NCBI RefSeq assembly: GCF_036365525.1
Contig: NC_090399.1
Coordinates: 31,032,430 to 31,096,429 of the forward strand
DNA from: Heterodontus francisci
Taxonomy: Eukaryota
Length of the DNA stretch: 64,000 bases
Direction: 5' to 3'
The notes under the pieces are model-generated. The model saw only the letters and a program-made list of their open reading frames with translations, was not told where the DNA came from and did not search any database. Positions 22,211-58,160 of the stretch are shown here, piece by piece (the first letter of the stretch is position 1; the number at the start of each line of letters is the position of its first letter). The position numbers and the translations under genes were made by a program.

Positions 22211-22259
22211 TGGGACTAGGAAGAGATATGGAGAGTTTAAGAGTTGTTCTAACATTCAA

Positions 22260-26787: not shown

Positions 26788-26882
26788 TCAAAAATTTGCA
26801 TGATATAAATAATTGATTCTGTCATTTACATAAATGTTGGGGTCATAACTGTAGCAGTAAGGGTGTACATCAGGTCTTGTAG
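26788..26882 (-). CDS. Gene A predicted terminal coding exon (YVN motif)
   Basis: Acceptor tttagcttttcAG, phase 1: (A)TRPDVHPYCYSYDPNIYVNDRINYLYHANF*. Followed by ~630 nt of unique AT-rich sequence and an AATAAA. Confidence 0.5.
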
Positions 26883-28244
26883 CTGAAAAGCTAAACAGTG
26901 GTAAAACTCGAACTGGCAATGGCAATAATGTGGCTAAAAACGCAGCACATTTTACATTTGATTCTGATTTACCATAAATGAGATTCCAAGACACCTCCCT
27001 CACGATTGTAATTCGTTTTTACAAATTTTATTTCGGTGAATTTGTTTTATCATCAAGGAGAAAATGAAAGCATTGAGCATTCAAGTCATGCGAAAAGTTT
27101 TTTCTTCCCCAAATATTCATCTAATGCCTACCTCGTAAAATCCAGTATAATTATTGTGGTTTTACATTTCCTTACGGTCTTTTCGCAGGGCCATCTTTCG
27201 ACTCCGTTCACTGAGGAGCAAATAAGGCTCTCTCCACCCCGCTGTCCCCCCGCACCCCCATGAGATGCATAAGAACTTTTATTCTATTCGTTCTTCGGAA
27301 GTGTGCGTCGCTTGTTTATCCATAAATTTCCCTTCAGAAATTGGTGGGCTTTCTTCTTGAGTCATTGCAGTCAGTATGGTGAAAGTACTCCTAAAGGCTG
27401 TTTAGTAGTAATTTCCAGGAGTATGACCCAGCGACCACGGACGGTGTAGCTCCAATTCGGGTTACTGTATGACTTGGAGAGGGACATGGAAGAATTATGC
27501 TCCCACGCACCTCTTCTGTTTTCACTGACTACATTTTCATCGGAGTTTAATTATTTTCTGCTGAAAATGTTCAAATTGACCTGAGCCTGTGTTTACTTCA
27601 CAGCAATCATACACTGTGGTTTAAACAGATACATTTCTAACAGGATCAGAATGCTACACCGAGCCTTACACAGTATAACGCTTGTGCCCTTATAAAATCA
27701 ATACCATCCACCTCAACACGATGAACCACCTGCCTCTCTCTGTCGCGATTCGTAGGAAAAAATAATGTGAAACTACATTATGATCTAGCACATTCTGCTT
27801 AGAAATGCACTTGAGCAACATTAAATTGGACTTCAGTATTTACTTCTAAAATCAATTAGGAGTCAAACAGTTAGTCAAGTAAAATAACGCGAATCGCATA
27901 TTTTGCTCTTTAACTGGTGATCAAAAACATTATATCACCCATTTCAAGATAAACAATTCTATCAGTTAGCATAGAACTTTCAAGAGTGCTTTTAAGCCTT
28001 AACGTCTGGAGTGAAATTAAAATAAACATGACAAGAAAATTTGGTCACAAGAATTTAATATCGCATTTGGAATATTACCTTTCCTTCTGCTCACTTACTT
28101 CAAAATTCTCGCAATTTAGAACAGATTTTAAAATCTTTTTTATTTCTATCATAAAGTCATGAGCCTGATTTACCAACATGTATGCTGCTGATCTTCAAAT
28201 AAATCCCATTCTGAACCAATTTGGGACCATTGCTTACTGAATTT

Positions 28245-30760
28245 CTTTGGCCTCCTCATCTCGAGAGACAATGGGTAGGCGCCTGGAGGTGGTCAGTGGT
28301 GTGTGGAGCAGCGCCTGGAGTGGCTATCAAGGCCAATTCTCGAGTGACAGGCTGTTCCACAGGTGCTGCAGAAAAATTTGTTTGTCGGGGCTGTTACACA
28401 GTTGGTTCTCCCCTTGCGCTTTTGACTTTTTTCCTGCCAACTGCTAAGTCTCTTCGACTCGCCACATTTTAGTCCCGCCTTTATGGCTGCCCGCCAGCTC
28501 TGGCGAACGCTGGCAACTGACTCCCACGACTTGTGATCAATGTCACAGGACTACATGTCATATTTGCAGATGTCTTTAAAGCGGAGACATGGACGGCCAG
28601 TGGGTCTGATACCAGTGGCGAGCTCGCTGTACAAGTGACTTTGGGGATCCTGCCATCTTCCGTGTGGCTCACATGGCCAAGCCATCTCAAGCGCCGCTGA
28701 CTCAGTAGTGTGTATAAGCTGGGGATGTTGGCCGCATCGAGGACTTCTGTGTTGGAGGTCCTGCCACCTGATGCCAAGTATTCTCTGGAGGCAGCAAAGA
28801 CGGAATGAATTGAGACGTCGCTCTTGGCTGACATACGTTGTCCAGGCCTCGCTGCCATTGAGCAAGGTACTGAAGACACAGGCTTGATACACACGGACTT
28901 TTGTGTTCCGTGTCAGTGTGCCATTTTCCCACACTCTCTTGGCCAGTCTGGACATAGCAGTGGAAGCCTTTCCCATGCGCTTGTTGATTTCTGCATCTAG
29001 AGACAGGTTACTGGTGATAGTTGAGCCTAGTTAGGTGAACTCCTGAAGCACTTCCAGAGCGTGCTCACCAATATTGATGGATGGAGCATTTCTGACGTCC
29101 TGCCCCATGATGTTCGTTTTCTTGAGGCTGATGGTTAGGCCAACTTCATTGCAGGCAGCCGCAAACCTGTCGATGAGACTCTGCAGACACTCTTCAGTGT
29201 GAGATGTTAAAGCAGCATCGTCAGCAAAGAGGAGTTCCCTGATGAGGTCTTTCCGTACTTTGGACTTCGCTCCTAGACGTGCAAGGTTGAACAACCTGCC
29301 CCCAGATCTTGTGTGGAGGAAAATTCCTTCTTCTGAAGACTTGAACTCATGTGAGAGCAGCAGGGAGAAGAAAATCCCAAAAAGTGTGGGTGCGAGAACA
29401 CAACTCTGTTTCACGCCAGTCACGATAGGAAAGAGGTCTCATGAGGAGCCGCCATGTTGAATTGTGCCTTTCATCTTGTCATGGAATGAGGTGATGATAC
29501 TTAGTAGCTTTGGTGGACATCCAATCTTTTCTAGTATCCTGAAGAGACCACGTCTGCTGACGAGTTCAAAGGCTTTGGTGAGATCAATGAAAGCATTGTG
29601 GAGGGGCATCTGTTGTTCATGGCATTTCTCCTGTATCCGATGAAGGGAGAACAGCATGTCAATGGTCGATCGCTCTGCACGAAAGCCACACTGTGCCTCA
29701 GGGTAGATGTGCTCGGCCAGCTTCTGGAGCCTGTTTAGAGCGACTCGAGCAAAGACTTTCCGCACTATGCTGAGCAGAGATATTCCACGGTAGTTGGTGC
29801 AGTCACAACGGTCACGTTTGTTTTTATAGAGGGCGATGTTATTGGCATTGCGCATGTCCTGAGGTACTGCTCCCTCGTCCCAGCCCAGGCATAGCAGCTC
29901 ATGTAGTGCTGAGAGTATAGCAGGCTTGGCACTCTTGATTTTTTCAGGGGGAATGCTGTCCTTCCCAGGGGCTTTTCCGCTGGCTAGAGAATCAATGGCA
30001 TCACTGAGTTCCGATTTTGTTGGCTATATGTCCAGCTCATCCATGACTGGTAGAGGCTGGGCTGCATTGAGGGCAGTCTCAGTGACAACATTCTCCCTGG
30101 AGTACAGTTCTAGGTAGTGCTCAACCCAGCGGTCCATTTGTTTGCATTGGTCAGTGATTATGTCCCCTGATTTAGATTTGAGGGAGGCGATCTTCTTGAT
30201 GGCTGGCCCAAGAGCTCTCTTAATGCCATCATACATTCCTCTGCTGTTTCCGGTGTCTGAGGCCAGCTGATTATGACTGCATAGGTGTTGCCAGTAGTCA
30301 TTTGCAGAGCGCCTGACTGTTCTTTGTGCAATGCTTCTGGCTGCTTTAAGTGCTATGGATGTTAACTCGCTGGGGGCTTTCTTGTAGTTCAACAGTGCAA
30401 TGCACTTAGCGGCTATGACAGGTTCCAGCTCTTCAATATGAGATTGAAACAAGTCTGCATTTCTCTTCACACGTTTGCCATAGGTGGTCAAGGCTGACTC
30501 ATAGATGGCTTCTGTGATGTGGGCCCACTTGGTCTCAGCATCCCCTGTGGGAGTGTTCTGAAGGGCGGTTACAAGTGAATTTAGAAATTTTTGTAGCAGC
30601 TGTGGATGAGAAATTCTGCTCGTGTTGATGCACGGGTGGCCCTTCTGCTTGGAATGATGCAACATCTTTGGTCTGAGTCCAGCCATGCTGCACACCAGGG
30701 AGTGGTCGGTGTCACAGTGCGCACTGTGGAAGCTGCGTGTGATTTGAACACTGTTCAAAG
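28245..30760 (-). mobile_element. RTE-clade LINE, 3' two-thirds (end of endonuclease, RT, 3' end)
   Basis: DTDHSLV, NYRGISLLS, AFIDLTKAF, ELLFADDAAL, RRLRWLGHV; frameshifted. Confidence 0.92.
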
Positions 30761-30764
30761 GTCT

Positions 30765-32924: not shown

Positions 32925-33000
32925 CAAATACTATATTTTCCGGAAGCATCTCTGAATATTCGTAAACTACAATATAATTGTAGCTGAAGTGGCCAGTTGC
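32925..33000 (-). CDS. Gene A predicted cytoplasmic exon 2 (YSEM motif)
   Basis: Strong acceptor ttttgtctttatttttcaccgtgcAG and donor G|GTGAGG; 76 nt. Phase 0->1 reading ATGHFSYNYIVVYEYSEMLPENIVF bridges the flanking predicted exons. Confidence 0.5.
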
Positions 33001-33719
33001 CTGCACGGTGAAAAATAAAGACAAAAGAGGTTCTGCAACAGCTCACGGCCATTACAGCGGGAACCTCTTTACTTAGCTGTCCAGCGTTTGATAGGGAGTA
33101 ATTTTAGTTTAATTATTAATCTAGTTTAATTAAACAATGCTATTTTAACACATTGTTGCTTACCTCTAAACCATTCAGTATGCAGTTAGCCGTTGAATTT
33201 CTACGAGTGTTTTCCTGATCATCCACCATAACTTTAGAGGAAGCTCCTTGGAACCATCGGTGAAATGGCATGAATATACTAAAGTTACCGAAAGTCTGTT
33301 CAAGGTGACCGTCCAGGAAGCCTGGAAATCGCGATGCCAAAATGACGCTGTAGACATGTCAGATGTCATTGGGGCACAGAGCCTAAAAAAGAGGATTTTT
33401 GAGACCAGTTAGAGGGTCAAATGTATCTTTTACTGAATGGTGAGTGCAGTCACACCGAGGATGCCGGTTTGAGATGGGTTGCGTACACTTGGGTTCCAGT
33501 CAAGCAGAGCCGCATTGACAGTGTTTGGCTCCTTTCTGCTTGGGCCTGTAACTGTCTTGAGAAACAGGTCATTTTTTGCCTGTATTGTCCTCGTAGGTAA
33601 TGGGCACAACAATGAACGGATTTCCATCCCTTTCTCCATTTGCAGGCTCTGAAATACTGACCGCCAAACACCCGGTGCCAAGAAGTAAAAGTGGGACAAA
33701 AATTGCATAGTGTCAAACG

Positions 33720-35290
33720 GCCCACGCAAGCCTCAGCGAGACCAAGTGGGCCCACATCAGAGACGCCATCTATGAGTCAGCTTTGACCACCTACGGAAAA
33801 AGTGCGAAGAGAAATGCAGACTGGTTTCAATCTCATATTGAAGAGCTGGAACCTGTCATAGTCGCTAAGCGCATTGTGCTGTTGAACTACAAGAAAGCCC
33901 CCAGCGAGTTAACATCCGTAGCACTTAATACATTGCTTTCATTGATCTCACCAAAGCCTTTGACCTCGTCAGCAGACGTGGTCTCTTCAGACTACTAGAA
34001 AAGATTGGATGTCCACCAAAGCTACTAAGTATCATCACCTCATTCCATGACAAGATGAAAGGCACAATTCAACATGGCAGCTCCTCATCAGACCCCTTTC
34101 CTATCCTGAGTGGTGTGAAACAGGGCTGTGTTCTCGCACCCACACTTTTTGGGATTTTCTTCTCCCTGCTGCTCTCATATGAGTTCAAGTCTTCTGAAGA
34201 AGGAATTTTCCTCCACACAAGATCAGGCGGCAGGTTGTTCAACCTTGCCCATCTAGCAGCGAAGTCCAAAGTACGGAAAGTCCACATCAGGGAACTCCTC
34301 TTTGCTGACGATGCTGCTTTAATATCTCACACTGAAGAGTGCCTGCAGAGTCTCATCGACAGGTTTGCAGCTGCCTGCGATGAATTTGGCCTAACCATCT
34401 GCCTCAAGAAAACGAACATCATGGGGCAGGACGTCAGAAATGCTCCATCCATCAATATTGGCGACCACGCTCTGGAAGTGATTCAAGAGTTCACCTACCT
34501 AGGCTCAACTATCACCATTAACCTGTCTCTAGATGCAGAAATCAACAAGCGCATGGGAAAGGCTTCCATTGCTATGTCCAGACTGGCAAAGAGAGTGTGC
34601 GAAAATGGCACACTGACACGGAACACAAAAGTCCGAGTCGATCAAGCCTGTGTCCTCAGTACCTTGCTCTGTGGCAACGAGGCCTGGACAACATATGTCA
34701 GCCAAGAGCGACGTCTCAATGCATTCCATCTTTTCTGCCTCCAGAGAATACTTGGCATCAGGTGGCAGGACTGTATCTCCAACACAGAAGTACTCGATGC
34801 GGCCAACATCCCCAGCTTATACACACTACTGAGTCAGTGGCGCTTGAGATGGCTTGGCCATGAGAGCCGCATGGAAGATGGCAGGATCCCCAAAGACACA
34901 TTGTACAGCGAGCTCGCCACTGGTATCAGACCCACCGGCCGTCCATGTCTCCGCTTTAAAGACGTCTGCAAACGCGACATGAAGTCCTGTGACATTGATC
35001 ACAAGTCGTGGGAGTCAGTTGCCAGCGTTTGCCAGAGCTGGCAGGCAGCCATAAAGGCGGGGCTAAAGTGTGGTGAGTCGAAGAGACTTAGCAGTTGGCA
35101 GGAAAAAAGACAGAGGCGCAAGGGGAGAGCCAACTGTGTAACAGCCCCAACATACAAATTGTTCTGCAGTGCCTGTGGAAGAGCCTGTCACTCTAGAATT
35201 AGCCTTTATAGCAACTCCAGGCGCTGCTCCACACACCGCTGACCACCTCCAGGCGCTTTCCCATTGGCTCTCGAGATAAGGAGGCCAAAG
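33720..35290 (+). mobile_element. RTE-clade LINE, internally deleted, with 395-aa RT C-terminal ORF (34055-35242)
   Basis: GVKQGCVLAP, LFADD, FTYLGS, C-terminal CxxC zinc motif. Jump from pre-RT sequence to FIDLTKAFD at ~33925. Confidence 0.93.
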
Positions 35291-37809
35291 TTGATTACAT
35301 AAATGATGTGTGACGTTTCCAGTGCGTTTAATTATATTTAAGTGCTATTACGTTTATTTGGAGTAAAATGAAATAACTGCAAAATGTCGCAAGGTAAGTA
35401 TTTGGAGTAAGACTCCAACATATTCTTTGTGGAATTTAATGCTGGCAAAGAGCCATTTTGGAGCCTAGTTCACTTCCGAATCTCCAGTCCAATCCCTTCA
35501 AATCAGTGGCGGAGAAAACCAGCCTGCTACAGAATGCCAACATCGGGCATTTGAATTGATGCTTGAGTGACAATTGCTTCTTCAAAATAACCCCCCACAA
35601 AAGTAAATTAAAGTAATGGTTTAACCACCACATTGTCAGTACTGTTCCAGTGTCGCCTCGTTTTTTACAATGTGCCGGAAAGTATTGCAAGTAAAGGAAA
35701 CTTCCCCCAGTTATCATAAAGAAATATTAAGCGATACACAGAATTAGATAGATTATACAGACAAGAAACAGGCCCATCTGCCTAATTGTCTGTACTGGTG
35801 TTTATACTCCACAAGAATCCGACCACTGAGACAAGCTGACAAGATACTCCTGATGAGGAGAAATTCTTGAGTTATCATTAACCACATTGGATTATTTGAA
35901 TTTTGAGTGTCATTAAATGCTCAGTTTTAATCCATACAGGATATAAATGGTCACCGCATTCACCGAAATGTCTTACAAAACACAATTTTCAAAACTAGAG
36001 ACTATATAATCCTTATTTGGTGCCCCATCATGTGCCGGGAGAACAAGCATCACTATAATTGGTAAAATAAAAGCAAAATACTGCAGATGGTGGCAATCTG
36101 AAATAAAAACTGAAGACTCGAAACGGTACTCTGCTTCTCTCTCTGCAGATGCTGCCAGACCTGCTGAGTATTTCCAGCACTTCCTGTTATTATTTCACTG
36201 TAATTGGTGTTAGAAATCCTGAAGTAGGAAAGAGTAATATGCTCGATCTGACAGTCTTAGTAACTGTCTGATGATCTCTGCTGAAAAGTGTATGAATACA
36301 AATGTCGTCATTCGGAGCAGGGCAGGGACTAGTAATCTAGAGCCCAGACTAATGCACTGGTGTCATATGTTCGAATCCCACCACGGCAGATGGTGAAATT
36401 TGTATGCAATTCATAAATCTGGAATTTAAAACTAGTCTAATGGTGACCATGAAATTATTGTCGATTGCTGCAAAAACCCATCTGCTTCACCAATGTCGTT
36501 TAGGGAGGGAACTCTGCCATGCTTACCTGGTCTGCCGTATATGTGACTCCAGCCCCACAGCAATGTGGTTGATTCTCAAATGTCCTCTGAAATGGCCTAG
36601 CAAGACATTTAATTCAAGGGTAGTTAGGGATGGGCAATAAATGCTGTCCTAGCCAGCGATGCCCACATCCAACAAACGAATAAAAAATGGGATTATTTGT
36701 GGAAAGATGAGACTATAACATGGCGGTCTCTATATCAATGATACATCACCTTCATGAAGACATAGCAAATAAAATCGAACAGTTTGCATTTATAAGATGT
36801 TATGAATTAACTACGAAAGCTATGCTCAGCTTATTGATGCTAAAGTAGGCACCTAGTAAAGCTCATTGCAATCACTTTTTCTTCTTTTCACACATTACGA
36901 ACATGTAATTAATTACATTGCTGGCTGATGAAAGTCGTTTTTCTTTTTCTCCTCAAATAGATGGCAACAAAACTTTCTGCTAATACATATTTTAATCTAT
37001 CTGTTCCATCCGTGTCAATTCTTCTCTACATTGCTACTAAAATATCGTGTGCTGAACTTGGGCATACTTCTGTTATGGGCCTATGCCACTGGTACATAAC
37101 TGTTACACAGAATTCTTACAGCCAGGTCATAGATTAGATGATCCTTCCACTAGGTGGGCTATATTTGAATGCAAATTAGAGCAGTGAAAGTTTACACTGA
37201 ATTACTTTATTGTTAACAGAGTAAAAATTTGCATCAACATATTAAGTCAATATTTAATGAAATATAAATGCTTTGAAACTTTCTGGCTGTTGCACCAATA
37301 CGAATTAATTGTCAGAATATTAACCGGGTGATATATTATTCATCCTATTTTATAGCATATTAGCAGCAGAATTTTGTTACTGAATCGGTATTTGACCCAA
37401 TCTTATTTGTGATGGGAGTAACAGCGTTCCAGAGCCTGCAATAGATTTGTTTGGAATTATTACCGAAATCAATTTATTGAGTGAGACTCTACAAATTGGC
37501 AGTGAACAGCCACAAGTATTCCATTATTTATAAACGGGTTTCACATATATTAAAAGCTTTTCTAAAGGCACAGGTCTTTCCGGGTAACCATCTGTCTGTC
37601 ACGGAGACCATGCTACAGTAATGGGCTTCCAGCGGGAATTTTCCATTCAGCCACATAGCTCGTTTTCTTTGTGTAGCACGTGATAAAAGTAATCATATTG
37701 AAAGCCATTGTGAAAAATATGCAAATTCAGATCAAGTGTCCCTAATTTCTTTACTTGTCACATCTCATAAGAACAGGGTGGTGCAATGGATCGAACAAGT
37801 TTCTGCTTC

Positions 37810-40590
37810 CCCTCTGGGACTGGGGCAGTGGGCCAGACACTGTCATTTCCCCCTCTAGGACTGGGTAGGGCAATGGGGCAGACACTGTCCTTTTCCACTC
37901 TGGGACTAGATGGGCAGTGGATCAGACACTGTCCTTACCTGCTCTGCATCTGGGTGGGGTAGTGAGCCAGAAACAGTCAAAGAACAAAGAACAAAGATAA
38001 TTACAGCACAGGAACAGGCCCTTCGGCCCTCCAAGCCTGCGCCGATCCAGATCCTCTATCTAAACATGTCGCCTATTTTCTAAGGGTCTGTATCTCTTTA
38101 CTTCCTGCCCATTCTTGCATCTGTCTAGATACATCTTAAAAGACGCTATCGTGCCCGCGTCTACCACCTCCGCTGGCAATGCATTCCAGGCACCCACCAT
38201 CCTCTGCATAAAGAACTTTCCACGCATAGCCCCACTAAACCTTTCCCCTTTCACTTTGAATTCGTGATCCCTTGTAATTGAATCCCCCAACCTGGGAAAA
38301 AGCGTCTTGCTATCCACCCTGTCTGTACCTCTCATGATTTTGTACACCTCAATCAGGTCCCCCCTCAAACTCCGTCTTTCTAATGAAAATAATCCTAATC
38401 TACTCAACCTCTCTTCATAGCTAGCGCCTTCCATACCAGGCAACATCCTGGTGAACCTCCTCTGCACCCTCTCCAAAGCATCCACATCCTTTTGGTAATG
38501 TGGCGACCAGAACTGCACGCAGTATTCCAAATGTGGCCGAACCAAAGTCCTATAGAACTGTAACATGACCTGCCAACCCTTGTACTCAATACCCCGTCTG
38601 ATGAAGGAAAGCATGCCGTATGCCTTCCTGATCACTCTATTGACCTGCGTTGCCACCTTCAGGGAACAATGGACCTGAACACCCAAATCTCTCTGTACAT
38701 CAATTTTCCTCAGGACTTTTCCATTTACTGTATAGTTCACTCTTGAATTGGATCTTCCAAAATGCATCACCTCGCATTTGCCCTGATTGAACTCCATCTG
38801 CCATTTCTCTGCCCAACTCTCCAATCTATCTATATTCTGCTGTATTCTCTGACAGTCCCCTTCACTATCTGCTACTCCACCAATCTTAGTGTCGTCTGCA
38901 AATTTGCTAATCAGACCACCTATACTTTCCTCCAAATCATTTATGTATATCACAAACAACAGTGGTCCCAGCACGGATCCCTGTGGAACACCACTGGTCA
39001 CACGTCTCCATTTTGAGAAACTCCCTTCCACTGCTACTCTCTGTCTCCTGTTGCCCAGCCAGTTCTTTATCCATATAGCTAGTACACCCTGGACCCCATG
39101 CGCCTTCACTTTCTCCATCAGCCTACCATGGGGAACCTTATCAAACGCCTTACTGAAGTCCATGTATATGACATCTACAGCCCTTCCCTCATCAATCAAC
39201 TTTGTCACTTCCTGAAAGAATTCTATTAAGTTGGTAAGACATGACCTTCCCTGCACAAAACCATGTTGCCTATCACTGATAAGCCCATTTTCTTCCAAAT
39301 GGGAATAGATCCTATCCCTCAGTATCTTCTCCAGCAGCTTCCCTACCACTGACATCAGGCTCACCGGTCTATAATTACCTGGATTATCCCTGCTACCCTT
39401 CTTAAACAAGGGGACAACATTAGCAATTCTCCAGTCCTCCGGGACCTCACCCGTGTTTAAGGATGCTGCAAAGATATCTGTTAAGGCCCCAGCTCTTTCC
39501 TCTCTCACTTCCCTCAGTAACCTGGGATAGATCCCATCCGGACCTGGGGACTTGTCCACCTTAATGCCTTTTAGAATACCCAACACTTCCTCCCTCCTTA
39601 TGCCGACTTGACCTAGAGTAATCAAACATCTGGCCCTAACCTGAACATGTGCCATGTCCCTCTCCTCGGTGAATACCGATGCAAAGTACTCGTTTAGAAT
39701 CTCACCCATTTTCTCTGACTCCACGCATAACTTTCCTCCTTTGTCCTTGAGTGGGCCAATCCTTTCTCTAGTTACCCTCTTGCTCCTTAAATATGAATAA
39801 AAGGCTTTGGGATTTTCCTTAACCCTGTTTGCTAAAGATATTTCATGACCCCTTTTAGCCGTCTTAATTCCTCATTACAGATTGGTCCTACATTCCCGAT
39901 ATTCTTTCAAAGCTTCGTCTTTCTTCAGCCTCCTAGACCTTATGTATGCTTCCTTTTTCCTCTTAGCTAGTCTCACAATTTCACCTGTCATCCATGGTTC
40001 CCTAATCTTGCCATTTCTATCCCTCATTTTCACAGGAACATGTCTCTCCTGCACGCTAATCAACCTCTCTTGAAAAGCCTCCCAGATATCAAATGTGGAT
40101 TTACCTTCAAACTGCTGTTCCCAATCTACATTCCCCAGCTCCTGCCGAATTTTGGTATAGTTGGCCTTCCCCCAATTTAGCACTCTTCCTTTGGGACCAC
40201 TCTCGTCTTTGTACATGAGTATTCTAAAACTTATGGAATTGTGATCACTATTCCCAAAGTAGTCCTACTTTGCCGCTATTCCTTTGCCGCTCTAGAACTG
40301 GGCGAGGTAGTGGGTCAGACAATGTCATCTCGCTTCTGGGACTTGGTGGGACAGAAGGTCAGGCACTTTACCCTCCCCCTCTGGGACAGGATGTAGCAGT
40401 GTCTCAGACACTGTCATCCCTCCTTCTTGTACTGGGTGTTGCAGTGTGTTAAACACTGTTCTTTACCTCTGGGACTGGGTGGGGCAGTGGGTAATCTACT
40501 GTCCTTCCCTCCTCTGGCACTGGATGGTGTCATGGGATTGGCAGAGAGTTGGACACTTTCCTTGTACGTCCAGCAATGGGTGGCACTGTT
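37810..40590. repeat. Degenerate ~45-48 bp minisatellite (37810-37977 and ~40268-40590) split by a CR1 insertion
   Basis: Unit approximately ctctgggactggg..ggcagtgggtcagacactgtccttccc on both sides of the CR1. Confidence 0.75.
37978..40267 (-). mobile_element. Young 5'-truncated CR1 LINE with uninterrupted 554-aa RT ORF (38060-39724)
   Basis: All RT motifs (KSPGPDG, NYRPVSL, DFSKAFD, GVPQGSVLGP, FADD) in one frame; (ttctttg)n-type tail. Confidence 0.96.
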
Positions 40591-40674
40591 TGCTAACACA
40601 TTGTAATTGCAACTTTGTCCTTTGTGGTTGAATCCAACCTCATATGGCGAAACGTCATTAATCATAAAATTTAC

Positions 40675-40772
40675 AGGTTTAGAAAGCATGTTGCAATATC
40701 GACTCTCTGTCCAGTAATTTGAGAGACATCGGCGAACAGGCCACCTTTTCGTCATGAAACTATCAATTGCAC
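40675..40772 (-). CDS. Gene A predicted cytoplasmic exon 1 (YCNM motif)
   Basis: Strong acceptor tgtgtttctcttcAG; only the phase-1 frame is open: GAIDSFMTKRWPVRRCLSNYWTESRYCNMLSKP (basic patch plus YxNM). Donor GTAAAT (phase 0) is weak, so the exon could instead be terminal and read to the stop at 40414. Confidence 0.6.
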
Positions 40773-40944
40773 CTGAAGAGAAACACATGGCTTGTAGTGT
40801 TGTTGAAATCAAAGCCTTGGAACTTGCAGTTAGGGTTGTCCAAAATTAGTATAAGGGTACTGGAGATATTGACATAAAATTTGCGTATTTGCAAATTTAA
40901 TGGGCGCTTTTAAGTAAGAGTTTACCTGTAAGCTTCCTTCCCCT

Positions 40945-41540
40945 AATATTGGCACGTAAATGTAGGGGGTATGATCAAGAGGTTTGCAGCAGACACGAAG
41001 TTTAGCCCTGCGGCAAATAGCGAGGAGGATAGCTGTAGGCTGTATAGAGGGAAAAGCGGAGATTTACAAGGACGTTGCCAGGAATGGAAAAATGCAGCTA
41101 TGAGGAAGGACTGGATAGGCTGGAGTTGTTCTTCTTGGAGCAAAGAAGGCTGAGGGGAGATCTGATTGAAATGTGCAAAATTTTAAGGGGCCTGGATAGA
41201 GTGGAGGTGAAGGTCCTATTCACCTTGGCAAAGAGATCAGCGAGAAGGGGGCATAGATTTAAAGTGATTGATAGAAACATTAGAGGGGAGATGAGGAAAA
41301 ACGTTTTCACCCAGAGGGTGGTGGAAGTCTGGAACTCACTGCCTGAAAGGGTAGTTGAGGCAGAAAGCCTCACTCATTCAAATGAAGTCTGGATCTGCAT
41401 CTCAAGTGCCATAATCTGCAGGACTACGGACCAAATGCTGGAAAGTGGGATTAGAACAGGTGGACCGTTTTTCGGCCGATACAGACACGATGGGCCAAGT
41501 GGCTTCTTTCTGTGCCTTAAACTTTCTATGATTCTATGAT
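40945..41540 (+). mobile_element. Internally deleted CR1 3' fragment
   Basis: FAADTK joined directly to PGMEKCSYEE..RGDLIEM; attctatg tail. Confidence 0.85.
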
Positions 41541-42191
41541 TTTTTGTATGTTTTTTCTTTGCGCGGATGTGTGTGTCAGAAATAGGGGCAGGATTTATCA
41601 TGACCCCCACCACCTGATGGCTGGCCTACCGGAAAATCGGAGTATAAACGGACAGAAAAGCTTTGGCATTGTAACAGTGATTATCCAATGAGCGCTGGCT
41701 CCGTTAGTGTTCGGATAACTGCATCCAGAAACCTTTTGTTAAGATGTGTGTTCAGAATTGCTTCGAGATGCCTTCATTTACGTCTGGAGCGAATGTTTGT
41801 CTGGATTTGTTCTCGATGTTTATTACTGCGACTTCAGCAGTTCCTGTTCTAAGCATTTGCGATCTTCCTCATGTTTAAAATGCAATAAAAATGTGTGCAT
41901 TAGAACAAATATTATTAATATATTTCAGTTATATTAGGTTTGATTGGTCGAATGGCAAAGTCTCAGTTTGCAGATTCGAGCAAATTTAAAAGCAAAATAC
42001 TGCAGATGCTCGAAACCTGAAATAAAACAGAAAATGCTGATGAAAGGTAATCAGCCTGAAACGTCTACCCTGTTTCTCGCTCCACAGATGCAGCCAGAAC
42101 TGCTGAGTATTTCCACCACTTTTTGTTTTACTTTCATGAAAATTTAAGATTGATGCATAACAAATAGTGATGTCGGCCAATTGCTCTGTTT

Positions 42192-44080
42192 AAACATACG
42201 AACATGCGAATTATGAGCAGGAGTAGGCCAGTCGACCATTCGAGCCTGCTCCAACATTCAAAAGGTTCATGACTGAACTGATTACTCCTCATTTCCACCT
42301 ACTCCCTATAACCTTCCACCCCCTTGCTTATCAAGAATCTATCTACCTCTGCCTTAAAAAAGACTCTTCTTCCATCTCCTTTTGAGGAAGAGAATTCCAA
42401 AGACTCATCACCCTCTGAGAGAAAGAAATTCTCCTCATCTCTGTCTTAAATGGGCGACCCATTACACTTGAACCATGACCCTTAGTTCAAGATACTCCCA
42501 CAAGGGGAAACATTCTTTCCACATCCACCCTGTTAAGACCCCTCAGGATCTTATATGTTTCAATCAAGTCGCCTCTTACTCTTTGAAATTCCAGCGGATG
42601 CAAGCCTCGCCTGTCCACTCTTTCCTCATAAGACAGCCTGCCCATTCCAGGTATTCGTCAAGTAAACATTCTCTGTGTTGCCTCCAACACATTTACATCC
42701 TTCCTTAAATAAGGAGATGTATACTGTACACAGTACTCCAGATGTGCTCGTACCAATGCCCTGTATAGCTGAAGCATAACGTCCCTACTTTTGTATTCAA
42801 TTCCTCTCGTGATAAATGATAACATTCTATTTGCTTTCCTAATTACCTGCTGTACCTGCATACCAACGTTTTGCAATCCATTTACTAGGACAGCCAGATT
42901 CCTCTGCATCTCAGAGCTCTCACCATTTAGATAATATCCCTATTTTATTCTTCCTGCCAAATTGGACAATTTCCCACTTTCCCACATTATAATCCATTTG
43001 CCCGGATTTTGCCCACTCACTTAACCTATCTATATCTCTTTGTAGCCTCCTTATGTCCTCTTCACAACTTATTTTCCTACCTATCGTTGTGTCATCAGCA
43101 AATTTAGCAACCATACCTTCGGTCCCTTCATCTAAGTCATTTATATAAATTGTAAAGAGTCCCCAGCACAGATCGCTGGGGCACACCACTCATTACATCT
43201 TGCCAACCCGAAAATGACCCGTTTATGTCTACACTCTGTTTCATGTTAGCTAGCCAATCTTCTATCCATGCCAATATGTTACCCTCTACACCATGAGCTT
43301 TTATTTTCTGCAATGACCTTTGATGTGGCAAATGCGTTCTGGAAATCTAAACACAATACATCCACCGGTTCCCCTTTATCCACAGCCCATGTAACTCTCT
43401 CAAAGAACTCCAATAATATGGTTAAACATGATTTCCCTTTCACAAAACCATGTTGACTCTGGCTGATTATCTTGATTTCTTCTAAATGCCCTGTTAGAAC
43501 GTCTTTAATAATCGCTTCTAACTTATTCCCTAAGGCAGATGTTAAGCTAACTGACCTGCAGTTTCCTGCTTTCTGTCTCCCTCCCTTTTTGAATAAATTC
43601 GCAATTTTCCAATCTAACAGAGCCTTCCCCGAATCTAGGGAATTTTGGAAAATGAAAACTAATGCATCGACTATCTCACTAGCCACTTTTTTTAACACTC
43701 TAGGATTAAGTCCATCAAGACCCAGGGACTTGTTAGCCTGCAGCTCCAACAATTTGTTCAGTACCACCTCCCTGGTGATTATAATTTTTTTGAGTTCCTC
43801 CTTCCCTTCCATTTCCTGACTTGCAGCTAATACCAGCATGTTACTTGTATCCTCAGTAGTGAAGGCTGATGCAAAATATCTGTTCAATTCACCTGCCATC
43901 TCCTTATTATCCATTATTACTTCCCCAGACTCACTTTTTATAGGACAATGCTCAGTTTGTTAACTCTTCTTTTATAATATCTATAGAAACCCTTAATATC
44001 TGTCTTTATATTTCGAGCTAGCTTTCTCTCGTACTCTAATTTTACCTTCCTCGTCAATCTTTTCGGTCATCCTTTGCTGT
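42192..44080 (-). mobile_element. Decayed CR1 LINE
   Basis: QHGFVKGKSC, YINDLD..KFADD, HLEYCVQY fragments. Confidence 0.9.
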
Positions 44081-44622
44081 AACAAAGCAATACTTGTATT
44101 TATTTAGCTTTTGGTAATAGATAAAACACAGCAACAGGAACAATAAATCAAGGAAGCATGCCTAGCATAACAAAATCAAAATCTAATAACTTTAATAAAT
44201 AGAAACGAAATGAAGTAATTTTAATAATTTTAAAACAATAAATCTTAAGGCCTGGTTACCCACCAATGAACTCAATTTCTTCGTAGATTTCTTCGTAGGT
44301 TTGCTCGATCTTTCTAAAAAAAAAGGAAATTAAATAAAACATTTGCAAGTGTTTGAGGGATGAAATAGATGTATCTTAAAATCGGTTAGGGTTCTATTTA
44401 CCAACCTTGACTTTAGCAATGGGACAAATCTGTAATGAACTGATGGCAGAAAGGGAGAAAAAGGTGATTAAATTAAATTTCAGGATTGGTTTTGTACTCT
44501 GAAAGCAATTAATTCTGCAGTCACTACATTTATGTATATTGAAATTTATGTACATATGATAACATGTGCCTTACAAGTGCGATTCTATGATTTTTTCTTT
44601 AATTTTAATTCAATGACCATAC

Positions 44623-44736
44623 CGCTGATGGGGCAGTTGTGCTGAGAGAGGACTATCCCAATAAGGATCAATGCAACTATTATCCCTGCTCTGATGTACC
44701 AAAGAATCTTCGTGCCATATGCTTGATCTAAGGAGG
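44623..44736 (-). CDS. NCR3: NKp30/NCR3-like receptor gene A, stalk/transmembrane exon with charged Arg
   Basis: Acceptor ttctggtttttttcAAG, donor GTATGG, 114 nt, phase 1/1. Encodes SLDQAYGTKILWYIRAGIIVALILIGIVLSQHNCPIS; the RAG motif at the TM start matches NKp30 LLLRAG. Confidence 0.85.
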
Positions 44737-45149
44737 CTTGAAAAAAACCAGAATTAATATCTTTGTATTTCTGAAAGCTATCATATTCCGTTATTTCTTT
44801 GATTAGTGAATATCAACTTATCTCTTTATGAAAAAGATTAAAGAAGTAGCTTGCATAACTAATTTGACTTAAACACTTGAAAAATCTATTTCCTTTGTTA
44901 ATTCACAAAATTCTTTGGGCGGCGAGGGCGGAAGAGAGTGGCTGAAGAAAGCCAGCGGCGAGGACGGGTGCAAGAGGCTGAGGGAAGGCAACGGCGAGTC
45001 GGGGAACGAGCTGCCCCGTTCCACTACGTGATGACGTTTCAGATCGCATGCGCGAATTAATCCTCACAAGCCGAGAGTTGACGTCGGCCACATTGGCAGG
45101 AAGAAACCGTTATGCGCATGTGCGCTGCTAGGAACGCCTGAGATCCACA

Positions 45150-48521: not shown

Positions 48522-48604
48522 ATGGTGCCATCATCCAGTTCGTTCTTCGACAAGACCTTGCCAACCTAGAACTGCTCGCTCCCTTTAGTCCTCACGTAGT
48601 ACAG

Positions 48605-50270
48605 TAAGGGAGTGTAGATAGTCTCAGTCATCTCATTATCAAAAAGGAGGAGGTGTTGGGTGTCTTGCAAAGCATTAAGGTAGATAAGTCCCCTGGGCCT
48701 GATGGGATCTGCCCTAGAATACTGAGGGAGGGAAGGGAAGAAATTGCTGGGGCCTTGACAGAAATCTTTGCATCCTCATTGGCTACAGGTGAGGTCCCAG
48801 AGGACTGGAGAATAGCCAATTTTGTTACTTTGTTTGAGAAGGGTAGCAAGGATAATCCAGGAAATTATAGGCCGGTGAGCCTGACGTCAGTGGTAGGGAA
48901 ATTATTAGAGAGGATTCTTCGGGACAGGATTTACTCCCATTTGGAAACAAACAAACTTATTAGCGAGAGGCAGAATGGTTTTGTAAAGTGGAGGTCGTGT
49001 CTCACTAATTTGATTGCGTTTTTTGAGGAAGTGACAGAGATGATTGATGAAGGAAGGGCAGTGGATGTTATCTATATGGACTTCAGTAAAGCCTTTGACA
49101 ATGTCCCTCATGGCAGACTGGTACAAAAGGTGAAGTCACACGGGATCAGAGGTGAGTTGGCAAGATGGATACAGAACTGGCTCAGTCATAGAAGACAGAG
49201 GGTAGCAGTGGAAGGGTGCTTTACTGAATGGAGGGATGTGACTAGTGGTGTTGCACAGGGATCTGTGCTGTGACCTTTGCTGTTTGTAGTATATATAAAT
49301 GATTTGGAGGAAAATGTAGCTGATCTGATTAGTAAGTTTGCAGACGACACAAAGGTTGGTAGAGTTGCGGATAGTGATGAGGAATGTCAGAGGATACAGC
49401 AGGATATAGATCGGTTGGAGACTTGGGCGGAGAAATGGCAGATGGAGTTTAATCCGGACAAATGTGAGGTAATGCTTTTTGGAAGGTCTAATGCAGGTGG
49501 GAAGTATACAGTAAATGGCAGAACCCTTAGGAGTATTGACAGGCAGAGAGATCTGGGCGTAAAGGTCCACCGGTTACTGAAAGTGGCAACGCAGGTGGAT
49601 AAGGTAGTCAAGAAGGCATATGGCATGTTTGCCTTCATTGGTCGGGGCATAGAGTATAAAAATTGGCATGTCATGCTGCAGCTGTACGGAACTTTAGTTA
49701 GGCCACACTTAGAATATTGTGTCAATTTCTGGTCGCCACACTACTGGAAGGACGTGGAGGCTTTGGAGAGGGTACAGAAGAGGTTTACCAGGATGTTGCC
49801 TGGCCTGGAGGGCATTAGCTATGAGGAGAGGTTGGATAAATTCGGATTGTTTTCACTGGAATGACGTAGGTGGAGGGGCGACATGATAGAGGTTTACAAA
49901 GTTTGAGTGGCATGGACATATTGGGGAGTCAGAAGTTTTTTTCCCCCAGAGTGGAAGAGTCAGTTACTAGGGGACATAGGTTTAAGGTGAGAGGGGCAAA
50001 GTTTAGAGGGGATGTGCGAGGTAAGTTCTTTACGCAGAGGGTAGTGAGTGCCTGGAACTTGCTACCGAGGGAAGTGGTGGAAGCAGGTACGATAACGACG
50101 TTTAAGAGGCATCTTGACAAATACATGAATAGGATGGGAATAGAGGGATACGGTCCCCGGAAGTGCAGAAGGTTTTAGTTTTGGCAGGCATCAAGATCGG
50201 CACAGGCTTGGAGGGCCGAATGGCCTGTTATTGTGCTGTACTGTTCTTTGTTCTTGTTGTTCTTTGTTCT
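48605..50270 (+). mobile_element. CR1 LINE (RT, few stops) in the V-TM intron of gene A
   Basis: ORFs 48653-49273, 49277-49864 and 49870-50178 with CR1 RT motifs; (ttctttg)n-like tail. Confidence 0.94.
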
Positions 50271-50484: not shown

Positions 50485-50859
50485 AGATTGGTTTGTCAGA
50501 ATTAGAAAAAAAGTTCTTGCTTGCTACTGTAAGGTTGGTCCCTGGTCCATATTTTTCCCCATATGTCACGTACTCCACTTTGCAATAATACGTTCCGGAA
50601 TCATTCAACTTGGTGTCTGTTATTTTTAATGAGGCATCTTTCCTTGCTTTGAAGGCCTCCGCTCCTGCTGAAAACACACGTCCTCTGTACTGTGACGTTT
50701 TATTGGATACTTCAGTTCCACCCTGGATGTTTCGGTACCATTTGTATGCGCTTATCCCGGTTGGACCATGATATGTGCAGTGTAGGTCCACAGTTTCGCC
50801 TTCAGATGTAATAATCAAGGGTGGGCTCTGAATCACGGTGATATTTCCAAACGTTAGTG
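50485..50859 (-). CDS. NCR3: NKp30/NCR3-like receptor gene A, VJ-type Ig V-set exon
   Basis: Acceptor ttttctatttcataacAG, donor GTAAGT, 375 nt, phase 1/1. Canonical V-set residues (LHC, YKWYR, DSGTYYC) plus J-like YGPGTNLTV in the same exon. GTEVSNKTSQYRGRV and YYCKVE resemble NKp30 GKEVRNGTPEFRGRL and YVCRVE. N-glycosylation sequons NIT, NKT, NDS, NLT. A weaker upstream GC donor (also phase 1) cannot be excluded. Confidence 0.92.
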
Positions 50860-50941
50860 CTGTTATGAAATAGAAAACTATCTGACATGAAGAATCCGCC
50901 AATGATAAAAAAAACACACATAAAGACAGAAATATGGGAAA

Positions 50942-53624: not shown

Positions 53625-54750
53625 TAACAAAATTAGAGCACATAGGATTGGGGAGAATATACTGGCATGGATTGAGAATTGGTTAATGGTCAGAAAACAG
53701 ACAGTAATAAACGGGTCATTCTTCAGTTGGCAGGCTGTGACTCGTGGAGTACCACAAGGATCAGAGCTTGGGCCACAGCTATTCACAATCTAGATCAATG
53801 ATTTGGATGTGGGGACCAAATATAACATTTGCAAGTTTGCTGATGACACAAAACTAAGTGGAAATGTGAGTTGTGCAGAGGATACAAAGGGGCTTCAAAG
53901 GGATTTAGACAGGCTAAGTAAGTGGGCAAGAACATGGCAGCTGGATTATAATGTAGAAAATGCGAAGTTATCCACTTTGTAGGAAAAACAGAAATGCAGA
54001 GTTTTTCTTAAATGCCGAGAGATTGGGAAGTGTTGATGTTCAAAGGGACCTGGGTGTTTATGTTCATAAATCACTCAAAGCTAACATGCAGGTGCAGCAA
54101 GCAATTAGGAAGGCAAATAGTATGTTGGACTTTATTGCAAGAGGATTTGAGTACTGGAGTAATGAAGTCTTCCTGAAATTGCATAAAGCCTTGGTGAGAC
54201 CGCACATGGAGTATTGTGTGCAGTTTTGGTCTCCATTACCGAAGGAAGGATATAGTTGCAGTCGAGGAAGTGTAACGAAGGTTCACCAGACTGATTCCGG
54301 GGATGTCGGGGCCAATATTCTTTAGAGTTGAGAAAAATGAGAGGTGATCTCATTGAAGCATAAAAAATTCTTACAGTGTTCGACAGGGTAGATGCAGGAA
54401 GGATGTTTCCCCTGGCTGGGGAGGGCGGGGGGGGGGGGGGGGGGGGTGCGGGGCGGGGGGTGTCTACAATCAAGGGACAATTCTCAGATTAAACAGTAAA
54501 AAATTTAGGACTGCGTTGAGGAGGAATGTCTTCACTCAAAGGGTGGTGAATCTTTGGAATGTTGAGGTTCAGTCATTTCGTCTGATCGAGAGAGATCGAT
54601 AGATTGCTAGATATTAAAGATAGCAAGGGATATAGGGATAGTGTGGGAAAATACGGTTGAGGTAGAAGATTAACCATAATTTAGTTGAATGGCAGAGCAG
54701 TCTCGAGGGACCGAATGGGTTACTCTTGTTTCTATTTCCTATTTTCCTGT
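53625..54750 (+). mobile_element. Decayed CR1 LINE with poly-G expansion
   Basis: gtaccacaagga (VPQG), FADDTKL, LVRPHMEYCVQFWSP. Confidence 0.88.
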
Positions 54751-56056
54751 GTACCTTAATTCTCCTCTGTTTTAGAAATGGGACTATGTTTGCCTATTTC
54801 CAGTCGAAGGAAACAGGGCCAGATTCCAGCTATGCATTAAACAGAGGTTCACGCAGGACCTTGAGGACCCTCCTGTGGCTATGATCCTGGCCCGGAGTCC
54901 TGTCTATTTTAAGGCTGCTAAATGTTTCAAAACAGTGTGTTCAACTATATTAGTATTAAAAACTTTAATATTAACAGTACCATTCAATTCTGTCAGAGTG
55001 AAGACTGGTAAAAAAATAATCATTCCCTGACAGCTGAGTCGTGCTGAAACTTCCTCAGGTCTTTGTGACTCGTCGCACAGATGAAACACTTTTCCTATTG
55101 TTACAATAGTTGTCCACGATCATCTTTTCCATTAACTTTTCAGTTCAACTAATAGCAGTTTTTTTTTTTACCAGTTCCCGGCAGCTGTCTTGTCTTTACT
55201 TATAATAAACAAAAATAATTTTACTTGTGTCTTATTTGACTTTGTACATGACCGTTAGCCATTTTCTTTCTTACCACATTGCATTCTTCTGACTTTGGGC
55301 AGGTACCATGTTTAATTGTGTAATTTTGTTCTTAAAAACAACCCAATTATATTCCACATCAGTTTTCTCCACAGCTGGTGGGCTTGGCAATTTGACTGCA
55401 CCAAATTCTCTGCTATTTTCGTACCTCTGGTTCAACCTGCCTTTGTCTCAGCTGCATGCAAGGTCTGGAGCGTGCAGCAGGGCCTGGGACATACACACTG
55501 TTGTGTATTATAGACATAAGTAAACCTTTACATAAATTCATAAATTACCAAGACAAGTGAACTGCTTGTACATAACACAGCCACGGGCTATCTAACACGC
55601 TGTACGTACCAGAATTGTAAAGAATTCATAGGGTAAGTATAAGTTAACTGTTCATACCATAATCCTGTTTCGTACATTAAATGCAGTGATTTTATGAAGA
55701 CAACTTGTTCGACAAGACAGACTTACTCTGCATCCGATCTCAACTGTACTTGGCCTGAGAGTGAAGTTGATAACGACTAACCAGAGCGGGCATCTGTCCG
55801 TTTGATGAACATTTAGGTTAAAATGGACACGCTTAAAGACGTATATAAATAGAAATGGCTCAAACGAAGAGTGACTGATATTTAATACTGAAGGATTAAA
55901 GACACCAGGGGATAGTTTCCACGGATTGTCATGATGCCGGAGTGGGTCAGAGACGTTTTATAACATTGGAGTATGTAAATTTGAAAATAACGCATCTTAC
56001 AGTCGACATAATCGTGTTCAGCAAGTCATGAAACATACTTTTGCAAAACGGTTGTA

Positions 56057-57779
56057 CAAAGAACAAAGAACAAAGAACAAATAAAATTACAGCACAGGAA
56101 CAGGCCCTTCGGCCCTCCAAGCCTGCGCCGATCCAGATCCTCTATCTAAACATGTCGCCTATTTTCTAAGGGTCTGTATCTCTTTGCTTCCTGCCCATTC
56201 ATGTATCGGTCTAGATACATCTTAAAAGACGCTATCGTGCCCACGTCTACCGCCTCCGCTGGCAATGCATTCCAGGCACCCACCACCCTCTGTGTAAAGA
56301 ACTTTCCACGCATATCCCACCTAAACTTTTCCCCACTCACTTTGAACTCGTGACCCCTAGTAATTGAATCCCCCACTCTGGGAAAACGCTTCTTGCTATC
56401 CACCCTGTCTATACCTCTCATGATTTTGTACACCTCAGTCAGGTCCCCCCTCAACCTCCGTCTTTCTAATGAAAATAATCCTAATCTACTCAACCTCTCT
56501 TCATAGCTAGCGCCCTACAAACCAGGCAACATTCTGCTGAACCTCCTCTGCACCCTCTCCAAAGCATCTACATCCTTTTGGTAACGTGGCGACCAGAACT
56601 GCACGCAGTATTCCAAATGTGGCCGAACCAAAGTCCTATACAACTGTAACATGACCTGCCAACTCTTGTACTCATTACCCCGTCCGATGAAGGAAAGCAT
56701 GCCGTATGCCTCTTGACCACTCTATTGACCTGCGTTGCCACCTTCAGGGAACAATGGACCTGAACACCCAAATCTCTCTGTACATCAATTTTCCCCAGGA
56801 CTTTTCTATTTACTGTATAGTTCACTCTTGAATTGGATCTTCCAAAATGCATCACCTCGCATTTGCCCTGATTGAACTCCATCTGCCATTTCTCTGCCCA
56901 ACTCTCCAATCTATCTATATTCTGCTGTATTCTCTGACAGTCCCCTTCACTATCTGCTACTCCACCAATCTTAGTGTCGTCTGCAAATTTGCTAATCAGA
57001 CCACCTATACTTTCCTCCAAACCATTTATGTATATCACAAACAACAGTGGTCCCAGCACGGATCCCTGTGGAATACCACTGGTCACACGTCCCCATTTTG
57101 AGAAACTCCCTTCCACTGCTACTCTCTGTCTCCTGTTGCCCAGCCAGTTCTTTATCCATATAGCTAGTACACCCTGGACCCCATGCGACTTCACTTTCTC
57201 CATCAGCCTACCATGGGGAACCTTATCAAACGCCTTACTGAGGTCCATGTTTATGACATCTACAGCCCTTCCCTCATCAATCAACTTTGTCACTTCCTGA
57301 AAGAATTCTATTAAGTTGTTAAGACATGACCTTCCCTGCACAAAACCATGTTGCCTATCACTGATAAGCCCATTTTCTTCCAAATGGGAATAGATTCTAT
57401 CCCTCAGTATCTTCTCCAGCAGCTTCCCTACCACTGACGTCAGTCTCACCAGTCTATAGTTACCTGGATTTTCCTTGCTACCCTTCTTAAACAAGGAGAC
57501 AACATTAGCAATTCTCCAGTCCTCCGGCACCTCACCCGTGTTTAAGGATGCTGCAAAGATATCTGTTAAGGCCCCAGCTCTTTCCTCTCTCACTTCCCTC
57601 AGTAACCTGGGATAGATCCCATCCGGACCTGGGGACTTGTCCACCTTAATGCCTTTTAGAATACCCATCACTTCCTCCTTCCTTATGCCGACTTGACCTA
57701 GAGTAATCAAACATCTGGCCCTAACCTCAACATCCGTCATGTCCCTCTCCTCGGTGAATACCGATGCAAAGTACTCGTT
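56057..57779 (-). mobile_element. Young CR1 LINE, near-identical to 37978-39695
   Basis: 390-aa RT ORF almost the same as the 554-aa ORF; frameshift near 56710 and small deletion near 56515; same tail. Confidence 0.96.
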
Positions 57780-58117
57780 GTAGAATGTGATTCTATGTTA
57801 AACAGACGCAAAGTTGGTTCTGACTACTTCAGGGATCAGCCTTCGCCGTATTTCTACCCTCTGTCCTCGACTTCAAGGGTGACATTAACCCATTTGCTGC
57901 AAATGTATTAAAATCGAATTTAAATATAGCAGAAAGCATTGTCATACCACTTCGTTAGCATTCCTGTACTGATCGCTCCAGCTGTAATGCTTAACACTAC
58001 TTTTCAACATGATTGAAATTTCTCGTGTTTATATTGCATGGAGTCCTCCTGGCATTTAATCGTGAACAATCCACTTGAACATAATCAAATAGATTAAAAC
58101 GAGTTAAAACATCTCAC

Positions 58118-58160
58118 CAGAAAGAAGAATTGGCGTCCAGATCATTATGTTTGGATTCAT
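58118..58160 (-). CDS. NCR3: NKp30/NCR3-like receptor gene A, exon 1 (signal peptide)
   Basis: ATG at 58160 reads MNPNIMIWTPILLS+G then donor GTGAGA. Phase 1 matches the V exon acceptor, giving signal peptide MNPNIMIWTPILLSALTFG. The symbol denotes the family; strict orthology is not established. Confidence 0.8.

Follow-up and report, generated by a model that had tools for sequence, protein, structure and literature searches.

The window analysed here, a 64,000-nucleotide stretch of Heterodontus francisci DNA, carries on its minus strand a leader exon, a VJ-type V-set immunoglobulin exon and a stalk and transmembrane (TM) exon, followed by three segments, E4 to E6, that the first-pass annotation had joined to them as the exons of a long cytoplasmic tail. 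The features are as follows, in the order of transcription.

58118..58160, minus strand: leader exon, ATG start, MNPNIMIWTPILLS plus 1 nt, phase 1, donor GTGAGA
50485..50859, minus strand: V-set Ig exon of VJ type, 375 nt, entered and left in phase 1, AG/GT flanks
44623..44736, minus strand: stalk and transmembrane exon, 114 nt, mid-membrane Arg, SLDQAYGTKILWYIRAGIIVALILIGIVLSQHNCPIS
44585..44622, minus strand: read-through segment past the donor GCG/GTATGG, adding G-MVIELKLKKKS, stop TAG at 44587-44585
40675..40772, minus strand: proposed tail exon E4, AIDSFMTKRWPVRRCLSNYWTESRYCNMLSKP, unsupported
32925..33000, minus strand: proposed tail exon E5, ATGHFSYNYIVVYEYSEMLPENIVF, unsupported, with the best splice sites of E4-E6
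26788..26882, minus strand: proposed terminal exon E6, TRPDVHPYCYSYDPNIYVNDRINYLYHANF, stop TGA, unsupported

The exon anatomy can be read directly. All six segments lie where they had been placed, with AG/GT flanks, junction phases of 1, 1, 1, 0 and 1 and a summed length of 801 nt; none of the codons split across the six-exon junctions is a stop, and the tail string given by the first-pass annotation equals the translations exon by exon. Each of the six exons was analysed singly, by reference to its coordinates, and splice sites were scored with our own approximate matrix of the vertebrate consensus rather than a trained model, which applies to every rank given below. By this analysis support falls on the leader, V and TM exons, and E4-E6 are unsupported. 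The leader donor is among the best-scoring 0.5% of GT sites. LINE insertions enlarge the introns, and the window also holds a degraded paralogue, a pseudogene whose V exon contains stops and whose TM exon has a stop 7 aa past the membrane span. No MHC or B7 genes were found within the window.

The 375-nt exon encodes a single extracellular V-set Ig domain (Pfam V-set, 4.1e-17) with a germline-joined J-like end of the form G-x-G-T-x-L-x-V. Its landmarks are the Cys residues in DLHC and YYC, a Trp within KWYR and, as the J-like motif, YGPGTNLTV. Among solved structures, the four that match the V domain best are all human NKp30 chains (E 2.6e-12 to 4.6e-12, with 106 residues aligned to the best of them), and the next match is a TCR V-alpha at 2e-10; chains of CD28, CTLA-4, ICOS and PD-1 are absent from the best 60 structure matches. 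The protein database yielded 772 homologues of the V exon, of which the nearest are shark NCR3 and NCR3-like proteins at 45-52% identity, including the published nurse-shark NCR3 cDNA products QTT61898.1 and QTT61904.1. The leader also resembles shark NCR3 N-termini (P0054, MNTIGLLWTSILL; P0058, MNPSPILW). No relative more than 52% identical to the V domain was found in the database, which suggests either a divergent member or a lineage missing from the database. A word-index protein search with the 167-aa frame around the V exon (residues 42-166 scored) gave no scoring match, as such an index is too coarse to pick up relatives whose identity is 50% or less. The family membership of the V domain is directly apparent, and the proposal that this is an NKp30/NCR3-type receptor is borne out by the Pfam V-set assignment, the NKp30 structures at the head of the matches and the shark NCR3 proteins as nearest relatives. 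Judged by its sequence, the gene is a member of the NCR3 (NKp30) family, a family previously described in sharks.

The TM exon places a basic residue inside the membrane span, the Arg of IRAG (ILWYIRAGIIVALILIGIVL), a motif that we take to resemble the LRAG of human NKp30. Evidence of transcription comes from three public runs, X1 being a weak match and the two others one sample of uncertain kind, whose contigs were placed on 40500-45000 only, an interval that takes in the TM exon, the read-through segment and E4. Only one gene-specific contig was recovered, at depth 5, and expression is low. In this 185-nt X1 contig, letters 95-185 (the last 91 nt) lie on 44736-44646 with no mismatch, and the alignment breaks, as observed directly, exactly at the TM-exon acceptor, 44736. 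The remaining 94 nt fall outside 40500-45000; a 94-nt piece of the V exon would account for 64 of its 345 possible words (0.19), and X1 contains 0.20 of the words sampled from that exon. We infer that this other half of the contig is V exon. The break at the acceptor argues for both transcription and splicing of V to TM; it backs the junction drawn by the first-pass annotation, and the gene appears to be transcribed. The leader, the VJ-type V domain and the TM segment with IRAG exceed chance, as indicated by the V-set assignment, the NKp30 match, the homologues and the contig.

Where the message ends is a separate matter. The TM exon stays open past the proposed donor, with a stop 12 codons on, which would leave a 20-aa basic tail. 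The donor at 44623 is in phase 1 and scores among the best 5% of GT sites, equal to the donor after the V exon. The X1 contig ends 23 nt before it, and contig coverage at 44645-44124 is none. On the minus strand an AATAAA lies at 44104-44099, downstream of the read-through stop, and another at 26159-26154, after E6; both candidate 3' ends therefore have one, and the signal does not discriminate between them. When the TM exon and its read-through were used as a protein query, to catch transcript-derived fragments that continue beyond SQHNCPIS, the search was blank. We infer the position of the 3' end, and our tentative choice, held with a little less than even confidence, is that the transcript continues unspliced past the proposed donor to the stop TAG at 44587-44585, which would leave the tail SQHNCPISGMVIELKLKKKS. 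A second route to a short tail would be a short terminal exon, comparable by analogy to exon 4 of human NCR3. In human NCR3 the tail has an exon of its own, exon 4, which follows the TM exon and comes in three splice forms (PMC12272517); a splice at 44623 would therefore be orthodox.

The TM donor may instead join one or more other downstream exons, either E4 alone or an unrecognised terminal exon, and so acquire a different tail. We consider this unlikely, although it deserves some weight; the estimate covers all splices to another exon, and overlaps the short-tail reading where that exon is short. The phase 1 donor of fair strength is what such a splice would use, and its position about 8 aa past the membrane span, at the end of a 114-nt exon, parallels the passage from exon 3 to exon 4 in human NCR3; the 500 nt of putative read-through 3'UTR have a contig depth of zero, which favours this splice weakly. 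However, a window-wide search (tblastn of 158 relatives against the whole window) found no exon like the relatives' tails, with no ITIM or other tail exon anywhere, and the degraded paralogue terminates within its TM exon. One weak match, between 40549-40441 and the tail of a frog NCR3-like protein (P0139; E 0.55), falls within a local repeat and was taken as chance.

The relatives themselves relate the charge of the membrane anchor to the length of the tail. In each of the 14 relatives whose anchor contains a mid-membrane Arg or Lys the tail is 0-37 aa long, whereas the median tail is 76 aa in the 47 with an uncharged anchor, and among the relatives examined it is uncharged anchors that long tyrosine tails accompany. 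Nurse-shark QTT61904.1 has a Lys in its anchor and a 3-aa tail. The tail of QTT61898.1, the other nurse-shark NCR3 product, contains NPLYADM, a YxxM motif, so tyrosine tails do exist in the NCR3 family. The shark NCR3 family is known to include both forms, charged anchor with short tail and uncharged anchor with tyrosine tail. An adaptor-pairing Arg together with a long tyrosine tail is a design absent from all charged-anchor members examined, and a 98-aa tail would make the present gene the sole long-tailed one among 15.

That combination is what the first-pass annotation had proposed, with the donor at 44623 joining E4, E5 and E6 to give a 266-aa receptor in which a mid-membrane Arg is followed by a tail of about 98 aa with YCNM (E4), YVND (E6) and further tyrosine motifs in frame. 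Every boundary in this model is canonical and in phase. The acceptors of E4, E5 and E6 rank in the top 1.5%, 0.25% and 3.9%, scores that match those of supported sites, and the sites of E5 are excellent (donor in the top 1.7%); E4-E6 are also unique, non-repeat sequence in the window, not LINE-derived, and the YxxM tail of QTT61898.1 offers a precedent within the family. Against this, the E4 donor is weak (top 19%), and contig depth over E4 is 0 in three runs. Compared with the 158 relatives, E4, E5 and E6 show similarity no better than shuffled sequence, and a protein search with the 71-aa open frame containing E6 was blank, so the conservation of tail motifs anticipated for these exons is not borne out. 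With the approximate matrix, the region downstream of the TM donor yields 6,294 chains, each made up of two internal exons and a terminal one, that pass the same thresholds and phases as E4-E6. Tyrosine-rich reading frames are similarly easy to come by: the window has 10 sites with an open 25-aa stretch containing at least 5 Tyr, E6 being one of them, and about 1-2 are expected in the downstream region. In composition E4-E6 are closer to random open frames than to genuine tails, of which just 1 in 36 scores as low, and an abundance of Trp, Cys, Phe and Ile sets them apart from such tails; E4 sits within a 132-aa open frame that extends into a local repeat.

With no homology to relatives, no contigs over E4 and a chain not above chance, the claim of a long CD28/DAP10-type tail lacks support, and we regard the 266-aa receptor as very unlikely. 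The broader form of the claim, in which the TM donor is used and E4-E6 are wholly or partly real, so that an adaptor-pairing Arg would be combined with a YxNM/YVN tail for Grb2 and PI3K, is scarcely probable either. Most probably E4-E6 are open frames that arose by chance in intergenic DNA full of LINEs, although the evidence fails to support the long tail without disproving it. Least probable of all is that the locus is transcribed yet non-functional, one copy in a fast-turnover receptor cluster, as the adjacent pseudogene with its V-exon stops, the LINE-swollen introns and the low expression (one contig, depth 5) might suggest, since no frame is broken in the leader, V or TM exon, the V domain keeps its canonical Cys and Trp together with the J-like motif, and the splice sites are good.

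Taken together, we interpret the locus as probably encoding a short-tailed activating receptor of the NCR3 family, whichever 3' end is used. The gene has a leader exon, one non-rearranging VJ-type V exon and a 114-nt stalk/TM exon with a mid-membrane Arg, and the cytoplasmic tail would be short, formed either by the read-through end or by a short terminal exon as in human NCR3. We envision that the V domain binds a B7-family or other cell-surface ligand, a ligand class suggested by mammalian NKp30. By the same analogy, signalling would fall to an ITAM-bearing adaptor (of CD3zeta, FcRgamma or DAP12 type), an acidic residue of which would be the partner of the Arg.

If the long tail were true, the receptor would be an unusual one, signalling both via an adaptor and by itself, and would be informative about how NK-receptor signalling became separate from costimulatory signalling early in jawed vertebrates. 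The present evidence points to another divergent, apparently expressed, activating-type copy within the large shark NCR3 family. The locus also illustrates that in-phase GT-AG exon chains over tens of kilobases of repeat-filled DNA are common by chance, and that such chains call for junction reads or conservation prior to interpretation.

Among known systems, CD28, CD28H and DAP10 share with this gene a sole likeness, the YCNM in E4 and the YVND in E6, and this only if those exons are used. CD28 differs in lacking a charged membrane anchor, whereas the shark gene has its anchor Arg, and the CD28 family differs further in that no tail homology was found and no V-domain match stands among the best 60 structures. 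The motifs YxNx and YxxM are sites for Grb2/GADS and PI3K, and cartilaginous fish already have CD28, CD28H and YxNx motifs as separate genes (PMC11599192). The signalling intermediate between NKp30 and the CD28 family envisaged by the first-pass annotation is therefore not needed.

The shark NCR3 family is far closer. RefSeq models named 'natural cytotoxicity triggering receptor 3-like' exist for Heterodontus, Stegostoma, Chiloscyllium, Scyliorhinus, Carcharodon and Hemitrygon. Kinlein et al. in 2021 reportedly described NCR3 subtypes of the nurse shark. With these proteins the gene shares one VJ-type V domain, at 39-52% identity, the G-x-G-T-x-L-x-V end and a similar leader; there are many copies per genome, and certain members have a charged anchor with a very short tail. 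The difference is that no member has a counterpart of the proposed E4-E6 tail. Human NKp30 (NCR3) has a short tail without a tyrosine motif, whereas the tail of the shark gene is a candidate only. The membrane anchor of human NKp30 contains Arg-Ala-Gly, and exon 3 of human NCR3 is comparable in size to the 114-nt TM exon here. As in the shark gene, a phase-compatible donor follows its stalk/TM exon, and human NKp30 (PDB 3NOI, 3PV6, 6YJP) is the closest solved structure to the V domain.

The NKp30/NCR3-like gene on the minus strand was proposed in the first-pass annotation to consist of six segments, and all six were seen at the following positions, with AG and GT flanks, compatible phases, no stop in the split codons and a total of 801 nt.

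Segments of the NCR3-like gene
58160-58118, minus strand: leader exon, beginning ATG, then GTGAGA
50859-50485, minus strand: V exon, 375 nt
44736-44623, minus strand: transmembrane (TM) exon, 114 nt
40772-40675, minus strand: E4, candidate tail exon
33000-32925, minus strand: E5, candidate tail exon
26882-26788, minus strand: E6, candidate tail exon, ending TGA

The exons were translated and searched one by one, never as a joined chain. The leader (14 residues) is similar to the N-termini of shark NCR3-like relatives, and the TM exon encodes ILWYIRAGIIVALILIGIVL, in which the proposed charged Arg indeed lies mid-membrane. The V exon encodes a V-set Ig domain (Pfam, 4.1e-17) with the canonical Cys pair and Trp; its germline J-like end reads YGPGTNLTV. 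Human NKp30 provides its top four matches among all solved structures (E about 3e-12); TCR and antibody V domains rank lower, and the best 60 include no CD28-family chain. A full HMMER scan (1.84 billion representatives) found 772 relatives, the closest single-domain ones being shark proteins named NCR3-like or SIRP-beta-like (45-52% identity; Heterodontus, Scyliorhinus, Chiloscyllium, Carcharodon, Stegostoma); the nurse-shark NCR3 cDNA products QTT61898.1 and QTT61904.1 are also among the nearest. The NKp30-like assignment of the V domain is thereby borne out: the leader, V and TM exons are real, and the gene belongs to the known shark NCR3 family, as a divergent member with the charged anchor of the activating type.

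The gene is also apparently expressed. A search of sequencing runs with the V exon gave one weak holder, X1 (0.20 of V-exon words), plus two runs from the same sample, X2 and X3, the kind of run being unrecorded; contigs of all three were aligned to 40500-45000, covering the TM exon and the E4 stretch. The sole gene-specific contig there, 185 nt from X1, matches 44736-44646 with its letters 95-185 and zero mismatches, while its first 94 letters fall off the aligned stretch, the break lying exactly at the TM-exon acceptor. Since a 94-nt piece of the V exon would account for 64 of 345 possible 31-mers (0.19), in agreement with the X1 share, we infer the V identity of these letters; the contig reads as spliced V-to-TM, and the gene would thus be transcribed at a low level. 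The contig stops 23 nt short of the proposed donor at 44623, and none of the three runs has contigs over 44645-44124 or over E4, so the contigs are silent on the tail. LINE fragments at 41000-44000 draw thousands of X1-X3 contigs (90-99% identity), so these elements are apparently highly represented in the runs.

Tail length follows the membrane span among the relatives. In all 14 whose span carries Arg or Lys in its core, the tail measures 0-37 aa, a count that leaves out two script-flagged relatives with Lys at the cytoplasmic edge rather than mid-membrane. Where the span is uncharged (47 relatives), the median tail length is 76 aa, and ITIM-like or other tyrosine motifs are usual. The same difference separates nurse-shark QTT61904.1 (Lys in span, 3-aa tail) from QTT61898.1 (uncharged span, NPLYADM in the tail). 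The first-pass chain, which pairs an Arg with a tail of about 98 aa, would alone break this family pattern, and the pattern argues for a short tail. A further form is seen in XP_067865365-8 (P0013/P0153/P0154), RefSeq isoforms of a Heterodontus francisci NCR3-like gene, in which the V domain runs straight onto a long acidic tail without a membrane span; its repeated Y-D/H-D/E-I motifs (WIYDDI, NYDEI, IYHDI) are unlike ITIM tails.

We consider it fairly probable that the gene encodes a receptor whose short cytoplasmic tail would arise either by read-through or from another short 3' exon. The TM frame passes the proposed donor (GCG|GTATGG) and continues for 12 codons to a TAG at 44587-44585, yielding SQHNCPISGMVIELKLKKKS, a basic 20-aa tail; we lean, tentatively, towards this form. 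A protein database search with TM exon plus read-through gave no match. An AATAAA lies 480 nt downstream of the stop. AATAAA occurs 90 times in the window, where dinucleotide-preserving shuffles predict 57.5 ± 7.6, so such hexamers are not discriminating here. Splicing to some other, probably short, 3' exon is a possible but rather unlikely alternative: the donor is a phase-1 site of fair strength (top 5%, approximate matrix), in human NCR3 the tail comes from an exon of its own, exon 4, behind the TM exon (PMC12272517), and the putative 500-nt 3'UTR has no contig coverage, a slight point in favour of splicing away. In tblastn of the window with all relatives, the V exon and a degraded paralogue were the only matches, without a tail exon of any sort.

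E4-E6 do not rise beyond chance. Scored with our own approximate vertebrate matrix, the proposed tail splice sites equal the supported ones, those of E5 being best (acceptor top 0.25%, donor top 1.7%) and the E4 donor weak (top 19% only). At thresholds set by the weakest proposed sites, the 24.6 kb beyond the TM donor contain 33 phase-compatible first exons, 579 two-exon chains and 6,294 complete chains whose terminal open frame has 20 codons or more. The window (six frames) has 10 places with an open 25-residue stretch of five or more Tyr, so about 1-2 are expected downstream of the donor. Against the 158 retrieved relatives, none of E4, E5 and E6 scores better than its shuffled versions, and a protein database search with the E6 open frame found no match. 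The amino-acid composition score of E4-E6 (log-likelihood, real tails vs six-frame background) is -0.04, as against 0.14 ± 0.09 for real tails of relatives (n=36, just one as low) and -0.16 ± 0.09 for random open stretches. That E4-E6 are single-copy in the window and not LINE-derived removes one objection and adds no support. With chance chains this abundant, homology absent among the relatives and a charged-span pattern to the contrary, the exact chain TM-E4-E5-E6 is very unlikely, and the long CD28/DAP10-type tail proposed for it is unsupported and improbable.

The surroundings are rich in repeats. Copies of a short repeat (~70-73% identical, partly tandem) at 40291-40530 and 37806-37960, directly downstream of E4, supply the C-terminal portion of the 132-aa open frame containing E4. 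A 113-nt element, probably a small interspersed repeat, occurs in the same orientation (75% identity) at 33387-33499, upstream of E5, and at 22503-22607, just past the paralogue TM exon. The introns are packed with LINE reverse-transcriptase fragments (56568-57740, 34055-35242, 43279-43914, 48653-49864, 38060-39724 and others), that at 38060-39724 being an intact 554-aa open frame. The degraded NCR3-like paralogue (16367-22417) is convergent with the gene.

Segments of the degraded paralogue
16367-16420, plus strand: leader-like piece, similar to the N-terminal end of an NCR3 protein from Chiloscyllium
17509-17775, plus strand: V remnant with in-frame stops
22322-22417, plus strand: TM exon, QTLWSVRAVVIALLGIIGVIIAACFHQKRQR and then a stop within the exon, 7 residues past the span; Arg present

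The receptor had also been cast as a possible intermediate between NKp30 and CD28-family signalling. Such an intermediate is neither needed nor indicated, since in cartilaginous fish CD28, CD28H and their relatives are already separate genes with YxNx and YxxM motifs (PMC11599192), and the V domain here, judged by its solved-structure matches, is of NKp30 rather than CD28 type.
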